NCBI GenBank assembly: GCA_907165135.1
Contig: OU015567.1
Span: 8,432,001-8,496,000 of the forward strand
Direction: 5' to 3'
DNA: 64,000 nucleotides
From: Oikopleura dioica
Lineage: Eukaryota; Animalia; Chordata
In this document: positions 23,001-38,000 of the stretch, piece after piece
Layout: each line of letters starts with the position of its first letter
Position numbering within the stretch: the stretch's first letter is position 1
Made by a program: the position numbers and the translations under genes
The notes under the pieces: model-generated
Seen by the model: the letters and a program-made list of their open reading frames with translations, nothing else
What the model was told of the DNA's origin: nothing
Databases searched by the model: none

Positions 23001-26000
23001 TGGAAAGGGAAGGATTGCTCGATTAGGACTTGTGCTATTGGATCTTTAGCGAAAGGTGAGCCCGCAAAGTTGTGCTTTGGCCATGGCGAGTGCGACGAAA
23101 AAACTGGCACTTGCAATTGTTGGAATCAATTCACCGGCTTCAACTGCGCGAGAAAAAAGTGCATTCCGACTTGTACCGGTAAATAAAAATCACGGTGAAA
23201 GCAAAAACTGATTTTTTCTAAAAAAACAAGGAAATCGAATTTGCAATGGAAGGACGGGCCGGTGTCTTTGCCGACGGAATTGGCACGGAGAGGATTGCAA
23301 CGTGCCGCGATGCCCAAACAACTGCAACAATGGCAACGGAAGGTGTAATCCGAAGACGGGCACTTGCACCTGTAAACCAAACTGGACAGGAGACGACTGC
23401 AGCATTCCTGCTTGCAACAAGGAATGCCAACATGAGTGTAAGTGCGACGCAGGCTACTGTCTCAGCATTGGACCAATTTTCATAATTGATTATTATTATC
23501 GATAGCTAAGTACTACCGTATTAGAAATCGTAGGTCAAGTCGTGCCCCTCCCTTCGGATCAACAGTCGGAAGCAAACGACTACTGTTTCGACTTAAAACT
23601 GTCAACTCAATTACTACTTTCAGCGAAGAGTTTTGGTAAAACTTAACCTTCCCACCCCAAGTTTCGCTCATTTCAAAACAGCGGATTAGTCTGTTTATGA
23701 GCATGTTCTATTCAAAGCTCGGGTCATTTCCGATCCGGCTCCGGTGTAAAGTTTAATGGTGATGTCTAATTAAGCGCTGGATAAATAGCACTTAGCCGTA
23801 ATGGCTCTTCTAATTGGGCTTATCAGCGGCTCAGCGGGGAACGCGTGACTCGGCTCATTTATCAAAAAATAGTATTTACTCATCGTATTTTTTCCGGAGA
23901 GACGTTCGGATTTCAAATTATGATTTAGGGTACAGTTACTACGTGTCTTTTTGAATTTAAAACTCTTATGAAGGTGTTGACCGCAAAATAAGCGCGCCAA
24001 TCCCTGCAGGTTAACTTTGAGCTGATGATGTCTTCATTGACAGACGCGATGATTTTCCCTACGGCTTGATTAATTAGTAGCTCTCTGAAACGAGAGTACT
24101 GAAAATAAGGGGAACGCACGCTGATGTTTGACATAAAGAACGCGGATTTTAGAAACACGTGACCCCCCTTAGCGCATATCCGGACATTCTACCGAGATAT
24201 GAACATTCGAGCGTTTCCTGAAGGGGGCTAAATACAACCTTTTGCATAATAAATAGCGCGTCTTATAAATGATAAGTTATGGTAATGTCAGTCTGTAGAT
24301 CATAAACACCTCTTTCTACTATGACGCGCTTTTTTTAAGGTGGTGGAAGTTTTCTAGCCCACTTCCGCCATACCGACCCTGGAACACCATACCTTTTCTG
24401 AATCAGCAGAAAATTTCAAGAATTTTGACCCATTAAAATTCTAGAAATCTTCACTTCCGGTCGATTCTAGAGCCGGAAGTCATCGAAATTCGGGAGTATG
24501 GGCAACTTGTGGCCTATCAAATTGATTCTCAGAAGATTCTCTATCATCTAAGAGAAGAATCAATCCCATCCACGGCAGTGTTGGAAAAAACCCGCCCGCG
24601 AACCCCGCGGGGGCCACGGGCGGGGGCCACGGGCGCCCGCGCCCCCCGTACCCGCAAGAAATCTCGGATTTGGCCCCCGCGCCCGCCCGCGCCCGTAGAA
24701 AATTTTTCATCTGGCCCCCGCGCCCTCCCGCGCCCGTGCAATATTTTTTTCGCGCCCGCGGGCGCCCGGGGCTCACTATAAATTGAATTTTGCATATTTC
24801 TTCTCTTGGGATTTCACCGGTCTTTTCGACCACAAAGTTCTTTGAAAGGATAGATTTGGCAAAATCGGCATTGGAAGAAGTCATCAGAAAAACGAATTTC
24901 TTCCTTCTTCCCATTTCCAGAAGCCAGTTTTTGGTTTCTTTCGAACATGGTCGGATGAAATAATCGGGCTCTTTCTTGAGGCGAGGGAAGAAAGAGCCAC
25001 GATCGACTTGAAACGCGTATGGTTCGTAACTGTACTCGAACGAGTTGAAGATGTCATCTTTGATCGTTTAATTTGGTTTAATTGGGTTTGATCGCTTCCG
25101 TATGCAAAGCTGAACATGTAACAGCTGTTTAAGTAAAGGAAGCAGATAATTTGTAGATTTTTGGTACTGATGTTTATCACTTGAAGGTATTAAAACGCCC
25201 CACCGAGTAAAAATCAACAGCTGAATCACATGTTGCGCCCTCTTTTGCCCAAAAACTGCATATAATCACTTCTTGATTTTGATTTTCATAAAAAAAAAAT
25301 CATCTAAACAAATTTCAAAAAAAATGTCTGACTACGTTCCAATTTTCAAAATGCCCGCTGACAAAGAGCTTCGCTACTGTAAGCTTTGCTTTTGGGCGGG
25401 AACTCGAAAAAGCCACTTGAGACATCTGCGAACCGACCATTCTGAGCTTTTCCTCGACGGAAATCGGCCGCGATCTTCTGAGTTCTGCTCTGCTTCAGAA
25501 CCAACTGAAGAGCGAACTTACGACATTTCCATCGAGCATTTCATCATCAAAGAAGACAATCAAGGAGGAAAGCAGCTTTGGGCAAGAATCAAATGGAACC
25601 TGAACAACAACAAACGAACACGATTTCAACTCTCCTGGGCAAAAGGATACGTTTTCTTCGACAACGCCGATTTGGAAGAAACCATCAAGCGCACTCTTCA
25701 GAAACAATATACGAAATGCGGCGCCGAAAAAGCCAAGGAAATTTACGATAAAATGAAAACTGTCGCCACCACCCACGAGTTTTCGAATTGTGCTATCTGT
25801 TTCGAGAGAATCGACATCGACGACCTCTGCATCTTCCTGACCACTGCTGAAACGACCTGTAGCGATAAAGTCATCCATGGAATCCACAAAAACTGCCGAA
25901 ACACCGATATCGCTACTGACTTCGTCGAGTGCCCGCATTGCAGACAGAAAGGCTACTTCTATCCCTTCCTCAACCCTGGAACTGCCGACAACAAGCAAGT

Positions 26001-29000
26001 ACCCGGTGACAACGTGATCATCCTCGACGACACTTTCGACGATATGCCACCTCTTTCTCCTTTGTAATCATTACCAATTTCCACAAGTTTACTTTTGCTG
26101 TAATCGTAATCATTAAACTCAATAAATAGAATTGTTAATAACTATTGTTGTTCCTAGCACTTTATTTTGAAAAATACTGGCCTCTGATTGGCTAAAAACT
26201 AAATTTGAAATATTTAAAAGATAAAAGGGGGTCAAGGGTAGTTTTTCGAGGGGAATTTTTTTAGGCATTTTATTTTGAGAAATGCCGGCCTCTGATTGGC
26301 TGAAAACTTAATTTGAGATATTTAAAAGATAAAAGGGGGTGATGGGTAGTTTTCGAGGGGAATTTTTCAGGCACTGTATTTTGAAAAATACTGGCCTCTG
26401 ATTGGCTGAAACTAAATTTGAGATATTTGAGAGATAAGAGGGGTTATGGGTAGTTTTTCGAGGGGAATTTTTAGGCACTTTATTTTGAGAAATGCCGGCC
26501 TCTGATTGGCTGAAAACTAAATTTGAGATATTTAAAAGATAAAAGGGGGTGATGGGTAGTTTTTCGAGGGGAATTTTTCAGGCACTTTATTTTGAAAAAT
26601 ACTGGCCTCTGATTGGCTGAAAACTAAATTTGAAATATTTAAAAGATAAAAGGGGGTCAAGGGTAGTTTTTCGAGGAAAATTTTTTTAGGCATTTTATTT
26701 TGAGAAATGCCGGCCTATGATTGGCTGAAAACTAAATTTGAGATATTTCAGAATTTCAGAAAGGCCTGATCTGTCAGGTACTTTCTGAATGGAATCTCGA
26801 GCTTCCGCGCAAATTTTTTTCGAAAATTTTTCCAGGATCCGAATTCTAGAAAAAATGCGCGGGGGCTCGAGCTTCCTTTCAGAAAGGCCTGATCTGTCAG
26901 GTAATTTTTGAACTCAAGCTGCCACTTCATCAGCGTAATTATGATCATGGAGCCTGAGAGGCGCATGTGAAGTATACTTTTTTACCAACTCTGTCGGAAC
27001 CTGAGATTCCAAAATAGAAAGATTTATTTCAAGCCACTCATGAATCATGACTTTCTTCTCGAATGTTGAGCCATTGACGCAATTGAACCGATAAGGGACA
27101 CTCACACCCCTGTTCAACCGATGCGCCCGGATCATTCCTCAGAAACACATTTTTCGATTTCTCAGAAGCATCTTTTCTTGTTTTTGTCAAGATGGATGGA
27201 CAGCCTGAGAGAAAAAGAAAGAGAGATGAGAATACTGAGAGCGACGAAGTAAAAGGAGAGATGCGCAAAATTTTATCAAGTTCTTCTAGTTGAATTTTAT
27301 TTGTCATTTTCAAAAAGAAAAGAAGGTGGTTGAGTTGGTTGCGCGATGCCAAGAGAAAGGTTTCACAATTGTCGGCTTTTCCTACGTTATGGAAGAAGGA
27401 GTGCGCAAAATCGCCTGTCGAGGACGCTGCACCGGTCGAAAAAGGGCTTTGGCTAATCTCAACAAGGATGGAACTGCTAAAATAGACAAACGTAAGTGCG
27501 CATTTTTTTTCGACCGGGTCTACGGCCTCTTACCCAAAAATGGGTAGATGACTACGGCAAGCGATACTTCTCCTTGGATTCAGGAAAGGATAATTGCGCT
27601 TTTTTTTGTCAATTTTTGGAAGTGCGCATTTTTTTCCTTTAAAGATTACAAGGAGGAGTTTGTTGCTTTCTGCAAAAAGGCAAAGAAAAGAAGATTCACC
27701 CATGAGCAGTTGATGAAGCTTGGCCGTGATCCATCCGATCCTCGATCAATTCAAGATTACTTCTATTCAAAGAAGATGACCCCTGCCGAGAAAAAATTGT
27801 ACGACGAACTGATCCCCGGAAATCATGACTCGATGCCTATCTTGAAGAGTACGAACGAGATTCGCTGGGCTTATTGCGGGGAGCGCTACAGTGCTGTTCA
27901 CATCTGGGAGACGGAGCTGACCGCGATGAAGGATAAAGGAAGGATTAAATCGTTTTAAGTTTGATTTTAAATTCATTAAATTATTCCTTTTCAAGAGCAC
28001 GAGATGAATTATCTGGTCGAGGACGTAGAGTATCCGAATTTCGGTTACGTAAAGGCTGGGTTTAAAAACTGACTGTACAATTAAACAATTGGCAATCATA
28101 AACCTTAAAAAGTCAATGGCTGTGTGCTCTCAGATAATCATGAAAAACTTGCGCAATATGGAGAACCAGGACGCGCGTCAGCCTGACGTCTTCCCTTGCC
28201 TTGAAAGAATCATCAAGGACATTGTCAAAGCGCTGTACGATAAACAATTGTGTCGCTTTACAGATGACCAGAGCAAGGTAATTAAAATTGCGCGCATTAT
28301 TTTTCTTTAGCTAAAAAATGCGCACTTGCATTGTTATTTAAAAAAAACGGCCAGACAATTCTTCGCTCAAAAAGATTGCGCGCTTTACTTTTGCTTCGCT
28401 TTCGCTTTCGCTTCGCTTCGCTTCGCTTCGCTTTCGCTTCGCTTCGCTTTCGCTTTTAATCTTTGATTCGCGTTTCTTTCTTTGCCTTTCGATTAAAGCT
28501 GCAATACAGACTTTCAAACTAAATTAAATATTTAGAAAACCTACAAGAAAGTGAGCCGGGCACTTCTCGCAAAGATGCTGAATGCCTTCTTCGGTGGATT
28601 TTGCGATTCAAATGGTCTAATTCATGAAAACAGCAAAGATACGACTCGAACCACCAATTGCGTGAAAGCTGCCATTTACGTCTCAGTTCCCTACAAAAAC
28701 TGCGATCTTGCTCGTATAATTCGCTTCATGGAGAAATTTCCAAAAGACAGCTTTCTCTCAGAAAACGCCAAACATCTGCGAAATGTCACTTTTGACTGGA
28801 AAAAGATGCGCGGAAATTTATTTCGGATGCAGTTGAACGAATGCACCAGAATGAACCAGCTGAAGCTCCTCAAGATGCTGAAGAAACTGAAAATCAAAAT
28901 CAGGTTTAGTCTGCGCATTTTTTCAGAACTAATTTAATATAGCAAACTGAGCCAGATTGCAGCTCGGATGAAGAGTTCGATTTCAAGAAGAACACTTCAA

Positions 29001-32000
29001 GAGTCGCCAAGATTACGATCCAGGATCCTGACATTTTTGATGAAATGAATAGATATGAAGACTTGACCGAGGACCAATGGAAAGCCATCTGGAAAGGAAA
29101 AGTTGTCGACGGACCCAAGCACCCGCATTTCACTTCAAAGACTTGCGCACTTTTTTGGCAAGATTCAGCGGTCGTTCGCCAGTTCCCAAAACTGTCCAAA
29201 ATTGCGATCAAGGTAAATCTTATAAAAAATATCACTTAATAAGTTTTATGATGAAGCTCGTTTCTGCAAGAGCAACAAGCTGCGAAGCCGAGCGCGAATT
29301 CGCCAGAGGAAGCGAATACACACGAAACAGCAAGCGAAACCGAATCAAAGCAGACACGATTTTGAAGCTTCGACAATTCGCCAAGCATGAAGAAATGGAG
29401 AGGGCGATTAAAAAAATGACTGAAAACTAGAACTGTGAAATTGATAGTTGATTGGAAATAAAACGAGTGAATAAGCGCTTTATTTGTACCATTACTTAAC
29501 TCAGCAGAAAAGCATTCATATAAATTGATAAGTTTTTAGGAAAAAATTGCGGACTCCCTGGGCGCCCGGGGACCCCGCGGGGCCTACGGGCGCGAGGGCT
29601 GCGGGCGCCCTCGGCCCCATGGGCGCTTACGGGCGCGAGGGCTTGCGGGGCCCCCGCCCGCGCCCGCCCGCACCCGCGCAAAATTTTGAAATCGGCCCCC
29701 GCGCCCGCCCGCACCCGCGCAAAATTTTGAAATCGGCCCCCGCGCCCGCCCGCACCCGCGCAAAATTTTGAAATCGGCCCCCGCGCCCGCCCGCGCCCGT
29801 GGGAAATGTTGCGGGTTTTCCAACACTGATCCACGGTCAAATCAACCGCTAAAAACTGAAAAAAAATTCATAAATTTTTGCTTTTTTCGTAGTTTTGGCG
29901 GTCGGTTTGACCGCGGTCGGATAAGTTTCTTTGAATAAATCGATAATAAGATGATTCAGAATCTTCTGAGCATCAATTTGATGGGTCACACTTTATAAAT
30001 ATTCGAAAATTTCGTCAACTTCCGGCTCTAGAATCGACCGGAAGTGGAGATTTCTAGAATTTTAATGGGTCAAAGTGCGTAAAATTTTCTGCTGATTCAG
30101 AAAAGATATGGTGTTCCAGGGTTGGTATGGCGGAAGTGGGCTAGAAAACTTCCACCACCTTAAAAAAAGCGCGTCTATAGTTCTCTATCCATGAAATAAA
30201 GAAAAACCAGATAATCAATCCCATGCAGCCTACACGATACTAGTAATTTTGTGCTGTTTTTCTCGTGTCTATTCGTTCATTAAAAATCTATGTAAATTAT
30301 AATCATTTCAACTATTATGGTGTCGATTCAAGCAAAATCTGAAATCAACGTGAGCACAGATTCCACCAGATAACCTGACATAAAGTTATTTCCTGAATAT
30401 AGCTTATGCAAAAAGCGATCATCCTCAGAGCACCCTGCCGCTTCTAACTACTCCTTAAATTCACGAGAAAGTAGTTCAACGTGGGCATTTAAAAATCCCG
30501 AAAAATTCCCGCTCCAAAAGGGGCCACCGAAATTCCACCCTCGAAACCACGTTCTAGAATTTACTTAAGCCTTTATTTCAGCGATCTGCATTGGCGACAC
30601 CTGCGTTTGCGGCAACGGCTGGACTGGAGAATTCTGTGAGAAGGTGGCAAAGGCGACGAATGTGAATGTAACGCTCAACAGTCCAGATTCTTTCACGATC
30701 AAGTGGGAATCTCCAGCGCCAGAAGTAAATACTGGAGCAGAAATCAACTGCGTTCCTGATTCTGAAGGATCGATTACAGTGTATAAAACAGTTGGGCCGA
30801 ATCAAACCGCGATTACGATTAATGATCTGGAAGAGGGTATGTCACTTCGTAATCTTTATTATCGTGACATCGCGGTCGTTCTCTAGGTACCACTTATACG
30901 ATCAACTTGTATATGAAAATCGGCGATCTTGTATCTCCCCGACGTCACGCAGCATCACGACAGGGATCCAGCCTCCACGGGTACTTAGTAGTTATCAAGG
31001 ACATCGGAGCGTATGCATAACCCGTACTTATTTATCGCTTATCAGAAAATGTCGATTTTCCGATTCGTGAAATAAAGACGTCTCAAGTCCGTGCAGCGAA
31101 ACTTTTGTCAAGTCCTCGCTAAAATCATATTTCAGAACATCAAAGCGACGCAAATTTTCTCCGACAAAGTCTCGATCAGATGGGAGTCTCCTGAAGGCAA
31201 AGTCGACAAGTTCAAGCTCATCTGCTCCTGCTCCGGTGGCGGATCTGAATACGAGTTTAAAAACGACTACTTTACGCATAAAATGACGAATCTCGCTCCT
31301 GACACAGAATACAACATCACAATGTGGTCCGAAACCAACAACGGGAAGCAATCGCGGAGGGAGACGCTCAGATTCAAGGATCGTTGGATTACAGTTTTTT
31401 TGCATAAAATTTCAACTTTGACCCAGTTCATTTTAAATTTTGAGAACACAAAACATCCAAACGGGCAGACGCTAAAGCAAACCTCGAAGCTAAACACGCG
31501 ATCATACGTGCCACACCAAGCGCAAGCCCAAGTTGTGGCCGACTTGTGCGTTGACATAACAAATAACGGCTCATTTCCCAGCTCAGGCACAAATGAAAAC
31601 GAAGAGTCAAACAGATTGTATCCCAAGTGTATTTTTCATCAAAACATTTCCGGTATAAAACTCGAATTTCAATTACACTTTCCATAACTACTTTGTCCAG
31701 ACATTCCTCCACCCAGCGGTGTAGAAGTCAAACAAGAAAAATACTCGACAATCAGCGTAACTTGGCGAAAAGAAGCACTTGCACAAGGTTCAGTTTCAAA
31801 ATAAATTCCACGACTTAGACATTGTTTTGAGTTTAAACAGCCCGTTTGTTGATCAAAACCCGTTTTATTTTGAATTAAAACTTCAGGCTACTACATCGAG
31901 GTGTTTTCCGGGAATGAACAAGTCGCCGAGTATCGAATCAACCACAACGAACTCTTTATCAATGCATCTCTTTTCAACTTGCACGATGATCACGTGTTTA

Positions 32001-35000: not shown

Positions 35001-38000
35001 AAGAATCCTCCGCCAAGGTCCTTTGGGAGCCCGTGGACCAAGAAACCTCAGGACGAGTAACACTGTCCTCCGAAAATTCACCGGAGAAAGTCATTTCCGT
35101 TGGTGCCGGTCAGAATATTCAAGAGCTACTGTACTTAGCTCCCAATACAGAATACAACGTTAAGGTTCAACTAAAAAAGAACCGAATACTATCAGAAGTG
35201 GCGGAGATTGAATTTCGAACCGAAATGCCAGAGCAGATTCCAATTTTGAAGCTCGTTCAGGTTGAAGAAAATGAGGGACAGGATTAGCAATTTTTGAAGT
35301 TATTCAAAAAAAAGGGCGTAAAATTGTAAAATCCTTAAAAGGCAACGTTGGGTTGGGAAGAAAACGAAACGGGCAGTTATCGACTCTCGTGGAGGAAGCT
35401 GAGTGAAGGACTCGAGTGCCACTAAGAGCCCCGCAGAAAGGGATTATTTATAGTGATTAGTCGTTTGAAATCCCCAGTTAGACACTTTTGCGTCGAAACA
35501 AGTCGAGGGCGGAACCGGACGTATTTTCAACTTATCGCCAGGAGAAGATTACCTCGCGAAGCTCGAAACAGCAGGAACAGAAAACTCCTCAGTACTCCAA
35601 TTCAGAACTTTGGAAAAACTTCTTCCCGTCAAAAATTTTAAAGTGGAAAAAGTCGGGACCAACACTGCTACAGTCAGCTGGGAACGCAACGGCGTCATGC
35701 CGGATAAATACGTTCTTGTCCAGCGAAATGAATATTCGGAAAGTAAAATAATTATTGAAGGCGATCAAAGTCCTGAAGAAAAGAAGGCACGGCTTGTTTT
35801 TTTTCTGTTATATTTCTATATTTAGAATAATCTTTTAAAAGCCACGTTCTAAGGTAGTAACTAAGCTTAAACATCTCTTCTATGGGCTAAAATATCAACT
35901 GACGCTTTACAGGTAAGCCAGAGAAATAAATCATCATCGGTCATTTCAACATTTCTAGCGCGAAGGAAAAACAAAGGTCAGAATCGGTCAAGATAGAGTT
36001 TGAAACTTGGCCGAAGCTCAAGGACCCGACGAACTTGACGATAAACTACACCACTCCCGCGGGTAATTCTAGCTCGTTAAACGTGCAATTAGACATCTTG
36101 ACCGATTTTTCTCCGGCTCACCTATTTCTTCAGGCGGGTTGCTATCTTGGTCAATGGCAAGAGCAGATATATTGGATGGCTATCTTTTGACCGTGTTCAA
36201 CAAGAGCTCGCAAGAACGCTCACCAGTCGCGGTCTTGAACATTTCGAAAAATGCCACAGAATATTTGTTCGACGATTTGCTCCATTCCTCAAAGTATAAA
36301 ATTGTTCTCCAAGCGATTCGGGGGGATGAGAGCTCCAAGAAGACAGAGGCCATTTTCAGAACTTCAACCGAATTGAAACCTATTTCAAAATGCAGGAATA
36401 GGGAAGAAACCATAAGAGGCTTAAATTTTCTATCTTTTTGTATTTAAAGAGTGACATTTAAGATGAATATTCACCTGTAATAAATACAGATGCGTACTCA
36501 TCATCGGATTCTCCGCGATCAGTAAAAGAATGTTGATCAACCCTTTAAAAGCGCTTCAAACATAAATGAAAAGTTTGCGGAAGTTAACTACTCGTACGAC
36601 TCAATGGAAAAACAACCAAATGTCTTCATGAAATACACAATATCCGGAACAAGACTTGCTCGAACCGTCATCACAAAATCCTCCAACACAACCGGAACCT
36701 TCGAACTCTCCAATCTCCAGCCAAGCACTGACTACATCGTTGAAGTTCGTACACAGTTTCCACACTATGCCTCGCCTCCTTGTATTGTCAACTTTCGGTA
36801 AATCCTCCCTCTCGCGTTCATCGTTTCATTTCATCAATGTTTAGTTCGTTTTCAAAGCTGTCGCCGCCTTATCAACTCGAAGTGAGCAACTTGACAAACA
36901 GCTCCTTCCACCTCGAGTGGTCTTCTTTAGCAGATCACGTGGACAACTTCCACATCGAAATACTCAACACAGCGTCTTCCAGGATCATCCTCAACCGCGC
37001 AATTTCCGCGAAGCAGGACAGGATTGACGTGGCAGGCCTGTACCCCGCAACGAAATATTCAATGGAACTCTGGTCTGTCAGACAAAACAAAAAGTCAAAA
37101 CGAGCTCAAGTATCAACGACAACGAAAACTAACCCACCGCAGATCATTTACCGCTCATCAACAGAGGAAGACGTGACCGTAACAGTAGTCAAACCGCGAT
37201 TTAACATCAACAATTACATTGTGACCTTGATGAAGGACAACGGCAATGACAAAGAAAACGCGGTTATAAGAAGAATAACAGTTTCGCCAGGAGACGACTC
37301 AGCACGAAGAATAAAGCTCAGGCAGCTCAAACCTTCAACAGATTACATCATCGAAATCTCATCAGTTCTCGACTCACAAAAATCAGAGCCTTGCAGCGTT
37401 TCTTTCAGAACTGCTCCTGGCTCTCCCAAGGACTTAAGGTACCCCCTTCACTTAACATACTTAGCCTTACTTTTTAAATAGAGCCGAAGAAGTAACAGAT
37501 GAGTCCGCGAAAATACTCTGGACCCCTGTGGACGAAAATATCGCCGATACAATCCAAATCGAAGTTCGCAAACTCGAGTACGGCCAATGGAAATTCCACG
37601 ATCCAGGGTTTTTCACGCTCAACTCTTCACGCAAATTCGTCACTTTACCACAACTTGAAGCAGGAGTAAGTTCTCTCAAATCAATCCAAAAATTAACATA
37701 CTGAATTGTGAAGGCGCCTTATCAAGTCAAAGCAAAATTCATCAACGAAGAAACGAGTGAAAGTGCGTTTTCAACAATCGAGTTTCGGGCAAAAATTGAT
37801 GGACCAAAGAATGTAGAAGTTTTGCTTGTTGAACGGTACTCTGCTCAAATGCGTTGGGCGGAGCCGATTATGTTACCGGCGATTGTGAATATCAAAATGG
37901 TGCTGCTGGAGACAGAATCGGGAAAAATCGTCAAAGATTACTCTCTTCCTCCGAAAACGAGAAGTTTCAGCTTTGATGAGCTCCAACAAGGGACAGAGTA

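Follow-up and report, generated by a model that had tools for sequence, protein, structure and literature searches.

The window analysed here is a 64,000-nucleotide stretch of the Oikopleura dioica genome (assembly GCA_907165135.1, contig OU015567.1, positions 8,432,001 to 8,496,000 of the forward strand). It contains a hAT transposon at 24576-29828 (5,253 bp) that carries, upstream of its transposase gene, an accessory open reading frame (ORF) of 247 aa at 25324-26067 on the + strand. The element is bounded by 13-bp terminal inverted repeats (TIRs; left, CAGTGTTGGAAAA, 24576-24588, + strand; right, 29816-29828, - strand) and by an exact 8-bp target site duplication (TSD; left copy ATCCACGG, 24568-24575; right copy, 29829-29836; both + strand), and this combination of short TIRs and an 8-bp TSD is that of the hAT superfamily. 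GC-rich 41-bp subterminal repeats lie inside the left (24632-24748) and right (29657-29799) ends, both on the + strand. The ORF runs uninterrupted through 247 codons to a TAA stop, and shuffling the ORF region 2000 times produced an equally long stop-free frame once. We read it as intronless from this open frame and from its intronless relatives. An AATAAA hexamer, a putative polyadenylation signal, follows at 26121-26126 (+), and then a 108-bp tandem array of 5.6 copies with a CCAAT-box core in each unit (26157-26748, +). A preliminary description of this DNA had proposed an uninterrupted ORF with a downstream AATAAA inside a TIR/TSD-bounded element. Both features are in place, as are the four motifs described for the protein, namely a finger (aa 19-39), the spaced segment IEHFI..IKW..SW, a C3H2C3 pattern (aa 156-206) and VIILDDTFDD (aa 231-240). 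As detailed below, an appendicularian hAT lineage encodes a separate accessory protein of ~200 aa with a predicted finger, chromo-like domain, long helix and RING, to which the window copy adds an acidic tail.

The genome searched was that of the Okinawa O. dioica (64.3 Mb, 19 contigs; C1 to C5 below are contigs). Protein and profile searches returned exactly three full matches, which are the window copy (W) and the ORFs of two other elements, A and B. The ORF of A (C5:3448259), 28% identical to that of W, belongs to an element of 8,481 bp that has TIR CAGGCATATAAATT and an 8-bp TSD. The ORF of B (C4:1312711) is 26% identical to that of W and lies in a 5,345-bp element (~C4:1312344-1317688) with TIR CAGGGGTCTGGATT, whose TSD is apparently 7 bp (ACTGGAG) and not 8 bp. 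All three genomic members of the family are thus found inside TIR/TSD-bounded hAT elements with differing TIRs, and in each element the ORF is located near the left end, upstream of the transposase and on the same strand. The three ORFs are 26-42% identical. W and B each contain tandem arrays with a 108-bp period between the ORF and the transposase (L005:5346-6357 in B), with a common CCAAT core and an otherwise different unit. The ORF is therefore a genuine second gene of hAT elements, as had been suggested, and it recurs in other elements. The expectation that homologues would lie between CAGTGTTGG TIRs did not hold: they belong to hAT families whose TIRs differ, and neither the ORF nor any remnant of a transposase was found in the 12 short CAGTGTTGG copies that were checked.

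Searches of public proteins from metagenome and sequencing-run assemblies added ~15 relatives. Five of these (L070, L079, L082, L090 and L095) have a direct hAT context. L070 matches the left end of B at 80% of nucleotides, L079 is a deletion derivative in which the ORF is fused to transposase sequence (E 2e-19), L095 continues into B-type right-end repeats (E 9e-24), and in L082 (E 3e-4) and L090 (E 8e-5) the opposite strand carries pieces of hAT transposase. The nearest relatives of the ORF, L079 and L095, are thereby tied to the B-type transposase and ends. Beyond these five and L078, which is described below, the contigs are too short to show context. Outside transposable elements, the genome yielded no paralogue that has the whole architecture. 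Two scans of viral contigs yielded no relatives, and a viral origin of the ORF is thus unsupported. A few weak genomic RING matches (L074-L077) were ordinary RINGs that do not have the middle domain. We conclude that the accessory gene travels with hAT elements, and that it is old and conserved.

The spliced transposases of the three elements were compared exon by exon. Those of A and B contain DHK, CxLH, IRF and S-x3-ER-x-F, all read as motifs, and through these two elements the lineage has the DDE transposase with CxxH and RW motifs that characterises hAT elements. The window transposase gene (27192-29430, +, exon boundaries inferred) keeps a start with a nuclear localisation signal and acidic residues, IRW, a helical region, the dimerisation region and the final S-x3-ER-x-F with the catalytic Glu, and its C-terminal half is homologous to the A/B exon profiles (E 6e-5, 6e-10 and 4e-7). 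Neither the first-Asp (DHK) and CxLH motifs nor a profile match to the exons that encode them was found in the window, which we read as an internal deletion of ~300 aa. The window copy does not have the complete catalytic triad of an autonomous element, and, with its catalytic core apparently deleted, would therefore be non-autonomous. Its accessory ORF is still open. The Pfam domain Dimer_Tnp_hAT matched none of the transposase pieces of W, A or B, likely because these transposases have diverged. A match of poly-ubiquitin to a B transposase exon was an artefact of summed 4-bit repeats. A TTCGC-repeat tract in an intron of the window transposase gene (28381-28456) is similar to the subterminal repeats of A and B, which may point to earlier recombination between hAT families. 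Transposases related to those of A and B are also found at C5:9178412-9179083 (31%) and C3:2057915-2058157 (38%). Another hAT family in this genome is young and multi-copy, with seven PF05699 dimerisation domains of near-identical score (C1:636914, 641782, 732634 and 737494; C5:13847453; C4:380299 and 393172), and it showed no match to the accessory-ORF profiles.

The accessory-ORF family is under purifying selection. Between B and L070, the ratio of non-synonymous to synonymous substitution rates (dN/dS) is 0.12. The pairs L088/L079 and L086/L090 are 72% and 64% identical in amino acids at saturated synonymous sites, with a proportion of non-synonymous differences (pN) of 0.17-0.21. W has no close partner; against L088, its proportion of synonymous differences (pS) is 0.84 and its pN is 0.42. 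This bears on the possibility that the ORF is a neutral host-gene fragment, recently captured as Pack-type cargo. Real captures do occur in these elements. A 256-bp piece derived from a host gene of the 5'-nucleotidase family (24814-25069, - strand, antisense to the ORF) is 92% identical to C1:10783193-10783448, where the host exon matches PF05761 (E 3e-15), and this shows genuine passive capture in the window element. In the stretch from the RING ORF to the transposase, element A contains a piece of an SMC-family gene, broken and ~2.6 kb long (L004:2600-5100; C5 ~3445600-3448100, - strand), with a coiled coil, an ABC signature and a Walker-B-like motif (Pfam SMC_N, E 2e-7; SMC6-like by eye). 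We take this piece to be a captured fragment of a complex tied to foreign-DNA silencing. A RING-less homologue, P0007 (L078:2715-3179), is flanked by a P450 gene and a kinase gene, with no transposase within 12 kb and no TIR found; such a setting among host genes would suit captured cargo, and L078 is possibly a decayed remnant or a domestication. However, the real captures are broken while the frames of the accessory ORFs are open, no host parent was found in the genome, and the ORF occupies the same position in three elements whose copies are only 26-42% identical. As the family is under purifying selection, a neutral single-copy host fragment, which the preliminary description had itself considered, is rejected for the family. 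The cargo explanation is largely refuted, and we regard it as highly improbable.

The RING domain spans aa 156-206 (25789-25941, +), with the C-x-I-C, the CPxC and the following Arg kept. All eight zinc ligands are present in all eight complete members of the family. The fifth ligand is His in W and its nearest relative, L088 (C3H2C3), and Cys in the others (C3HC4). A family profile gave 31 matches in the PDB, all to RINGs of E3 ligases, the best being HRD1 (E 6e-6); RNF4 was among them, with no preference over other RINGs. An AlphaFold (AF2) model built from 18 sequences reached a predicted local distance difference test score (pLDDT) of 76.7 and a predicted template modelling score (pTM) of 0.74, while a model from 4 sequences (pLDDT 39) was unusable. 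Structural matches to aa 113-224 of the former (VIA) were mostly RING and U-box domains, with Slx1 first (Z 5.2-5.5, root-mean-square deviation 3-4). Such Z scores are modest on the tool's own calibration, and the matches carry weight because they agree with the sequence profile. Foldseek searches of the PDB and BFVD found nothing at E <= 0.001, and RING look-alikes in the ESM Atlas (scores of at most 0.86, including RAG1 fragments at 0.83) are leads only. Profile and model together show a predicted RING fold with intact zinc ligands, which upholds the RING of the preliminary description. The hydrophobic residue before Cys2 and the Pro of CPxC are kept, and Arg, the linchpin residue, follows the last CPxC in seven of the eight complete RINGs. 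Functional RING ligases engage E2~Ub through these positions, and the E2-contact Ile/Pro and the post-CPxC Arg persist across relatives that are only 20-30% identical. We infer that the RING probably acts as a ubiquitin E3.

The N-terminal finger (CxxC-x11-H-x4-H, aa 19-39, 25378-25440, +) has an identical spacing in each of the 12 homologues whose sequence extends over it. It is followed by a predicted three-stranded sheet with helices (aa 64-150, 25513-25773, +). The chromo-like character that had been proposed for this segment stands weakly, by way of a distant relative, P0016, and of the fold. The middle region of P0016 matches Pfam Chromo at E 1e-4 to 4e-4, which is below the cut-off, and many chromodomains in the PDB, including those of Polycomb, LHP1 and HP1 (E 0.006-0.015). 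When P0016 is left out of the family profile, that profile gives P0016 12.2 bits, against 11.9 for the best of 2000 shuffles. In several members, TFEP stands at the position of the chromodomain TWEP. The sole fold match of the middle domain is to Chd1 from residue 282/286 (Z 2.3-2.4), which we take to be the second chromodomain of Chd1. For the window protein itself, there was no direct chromodomain match, and an ESM Atlas search with the middle domain gave no usable match. When aligned through P0016, Y66 and W91 correspond to two of the aromatic-cage positions. The cage is incomplete, and here the earlier proposal falls short. With moderate confidence, we therefore call the region chromo-like, which does not imply methyl-lysine binding.

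The acidic tail is where the window protein stands apart. Its VIILDDTFDD (aa 231-240, 26014-26043, +) fits the consensus of a SUMO-interacting motif (SIM) at VIILDD, and 1.4% of shuffles of the whole protein give such a motif, a figure obtained post hoc. C-ending codons outnumber T-ending ones by 11 to 1 in the tail and by 57 to 24 in the ORF, compared with 3 to 7 in the untranslated region. This codon bias of the tail is coding-like, and the tail has thus been coding for a long time. A SIM-like motif is present in one of the eight complete C-termini, and the other seven end within ~12 residues of the RING. The preliminary description had proposed a SUMO-targeted ubiquitin ligase (STUbL) similar to RNF4 and ICP0, which would remove SUMOylated silencing factors. 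The motif and the long coding history of the tail speak for such a ligase, and RNF4 is among the RING matches, though not preferentially. Nevertheless, the STUbL layout fails as a family trait because the seven other complete C-termini do not have the SIM. The three nearest relatives are truncated upstream of the tail position. RNF4 has tandem N-terminal SIMs, unlike the single motif of W, which is C-terminal to the RING. The likeness to RNF4 and ICP0 is thus confined to a RING and one unconserved SIM-like motif in the W copy, and we consider the STUbL explanation improbable. In W, the acidic tail, which is specific to its lineage, may confer SUMO binding in addition, but this is not how the family as a whole works.

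The hAT element is itself nested in an outer, MITE-like (miniature inverted-repeat transposable element) inverted-repeat element with 227-nt arms that are 89% complementary (24323-24549 and 29949-30175). Read mapping showed very high DNA depth over its left arm. Both elements together appear to be located in an intron of a fibronectin-III-repeat gene. Around 20 places in the genome carry the ends of the window element. Exact 8-bp TSDs flank 11 of the 12 short CAGTGTTGG copies that could be rebuilt, which shows that the family was mobile recently. The interiors of these short copies are satellite arrays. Copies with the same TIRs at C1:10161329-10163415, C2:5352590-5354739 and C4:1262904-1265310, for example, are non-autonomous elements of 1.2-2.4 kb, with internal ~55-bp satellite arrays that vary in length and with perfect 8-bp TSDs. 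An isolated third CAGTGTTGG match is found in the window at 35659-35667 (- strand). The assembly has one copy of the interior that contains the ORF and the window transposase. In DNA from a different individual (X2), the ORF is found with 0 differences over 927 nt, at about one third of the depth of the flank contig, which itself differs by 4% from the window. This depth fits a young, polymorphic insertion and is no proof of a second site.

What might such a protein do for its element? Mobile elements are marked by H3K9me2/3 in O. dioica testis, and the species lacks both DNMT1 and DNMT3 (PMC5240408). Any counter-silencing would therefore act on proteins, which suits an E3. We propose that the finger and the chromo-like domain would recruit the accessory protein to DNA or nucleosomes, perhaps to the 108-bp CCAAT array of the element itself, and that the RING would ubiquitylate a chromatin protein or repressor there, leaving the element transcribable or accessible. 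Such a protein would play the role that VANC plays for VANDAL, via different chemistry. At its most general, this reading, an accessory E3 ligase that is taken to chromatin by its N-terminal modules and favours the element, is the one we prefer, at somewhat less than an even chance. Anti-silencing is an attractive, unproven hypothesis, drawn by analogy. Its specific form, in which a chromatin-targeted ligase of an animal transposon removes or overrides H3K9me-type silencing at cognate elements, as a chordate counterpart of VANC aimed in one subfamily by a newly gained SUMO-binding tail, seems to us rather doubtful.

Several observations weigh against the E3 ligase. The spacing between Cys3 and His4 of the RING (3-6 residues) is longer than canonical, the best fold match is the RING of Slx1, no member reaches the Pfam RING cut-off, and the window protein has no Pfam match at all. 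The middle-domain profile matched no chromodomain in the PDB, and the third cage position is Asn, Asp or Glu in place of an aromatic residue, so that the protein does not have the complete aromatic cage of a methyl-lysine reader. Copy number is low, with a single ORF-bearing copy in the assembly for each of the three families. Profile searches found no accessory-ORF match at the related transposases C5:9178412 and C3:2057915, the former of which counts here. Raw RNA runs X5 and X8 had zero depth, even on host exons, with reads less than 95% alike; because of the zero host-exon depth, we take these runs to come from another lineage and to be uninformative. A run search found the window sequence in no RNA run. 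A and B are annotated genes with OKI2018_I69 names in an RNA-seq-guided annotation (PMC8008620), which is weak support for expression.

Some of these points could equally describe a non-catalytic transposition cofactor, whose finger and chromo-like domain would bind the element ends or target chromatin and whose RING would dimerise, or scaffold transposase assembly or targeting. The RING of Slx1 is mainly a structural domain, and the top fold match covers the Slx1 helix plus RING. The atypical spacing and the Cys/His switch at the fifth ligand are in keeping with a structural role, linkage and selection serve this explanation equally well, and the Myb-like second protein of Harbinger elements is a parallel. 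However, a cofactor would not account for E2-contact residues that persist at 20-30% identity. The short non-autonomous copies, and many hATs, also move without a copy in cis, although supply in trans is possible. We judge the cofactor unlikely; should it prove to be correct, it would still constitute a new two-component hAT design. Somewhat further from the preferred reading is a self-regulating E3, whose targets would be the transposase of the element itself or the factors that repair DNA at breaks left by excision, and which would tune transposition and not counter silencing. The E3 features of the RING, the low copy number of full-length elements, the SMC-family fragment captured by element A and the E3 RING of RAG1-like proteins (PMC1131882) are all compatible with this. 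The chromo-like module and the DNA-finger point instead to chromatin substrates, and we consider self-regulation quite unlikely.

The E3 ligase that favours its element thus stays the preferred reading of what is a real, new hAT variant; as an E3 it is plausible, while the STUbL version is weak. A stand-alone RING gene conserved across hATs whose ORFs are only 26-42% identical suggests an old, selected function. As a well-folding protein of ~200 aa, from an animal with simple heterochromatin that is kept in laboratory culture, it allows a direct test of whether animal transposons encode counter-silencing enzymes. The literature searched, to which Repbase and most subscription papers did not belong, mentioned no hAT that carries a RING as a gene of its own. 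hAT elements are textbook one-gene transposons. In its 8-bp TSD, short TIRs starting with CAG, subterminal repeats and DDE transposase with CxxH, RW-like and S-x3-ER-x-F motifs (the full set in A and B), the lineage resembles Ac, hobo, Hermes and Tol2, from which it differs in its separate conserved second gene, its transposases that miss Dimer_Tnp_hAT and the apparent 7-bp TSD of B. Second proteins or ubiquitin/SUMO modules are known from other DNA transposons, such as the Myb-like protein of Harbinger, KolX of Kolobok and the SUMO-protease domains of Mutator and Zisupton, but these are other superfamilies with other domains.

The closest parallels in organisation are VANC of the Arabidopsis Mutator-like VANDAL elements and TnpA of Spm, which are accessory proteins encoded by a separate gene of a DNA transposon (PMC6719617; bioRxiv 10.64898/2026.08.24.746577). 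A 2019 review counts only three anti-silencing mechanisms encoded by transposable elements, all of them from plants (PMC6719617). As with VANC, the accessory gene is separate and kept under selection within the element. VANC depends on a tandem motif (PMC6719617), and the internal tandem arrays of the window element could likewise be the target of the accessory protein. Unlike these systems, however, the O. dioica elements belong to a different superfamily and kingdom, and their accessory protein, for which homology would not be expected, is not a member of the VANC or TnpA families. Anti-silencing has been demonstrated for VANC, which acts on DNA methylation, whereas O. dioica is without DNMT1/3 (PMC5240408); no RING is described for VANC or TnpA in the papers compared. 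RAG1 and RAG1-like proteins, which are Transib-related, combine a RING and zinc-binding motifs with a lineage of hairpin-forming DNA transposases, and E3 activity has been reported for RAG1 (PMC1131882). In those proteins, the RING belongs to the polypeptide of the transposase or recombinase itself, whereas here it is encoded by a stand-alone hAT gene, together with a chromo-like domain.

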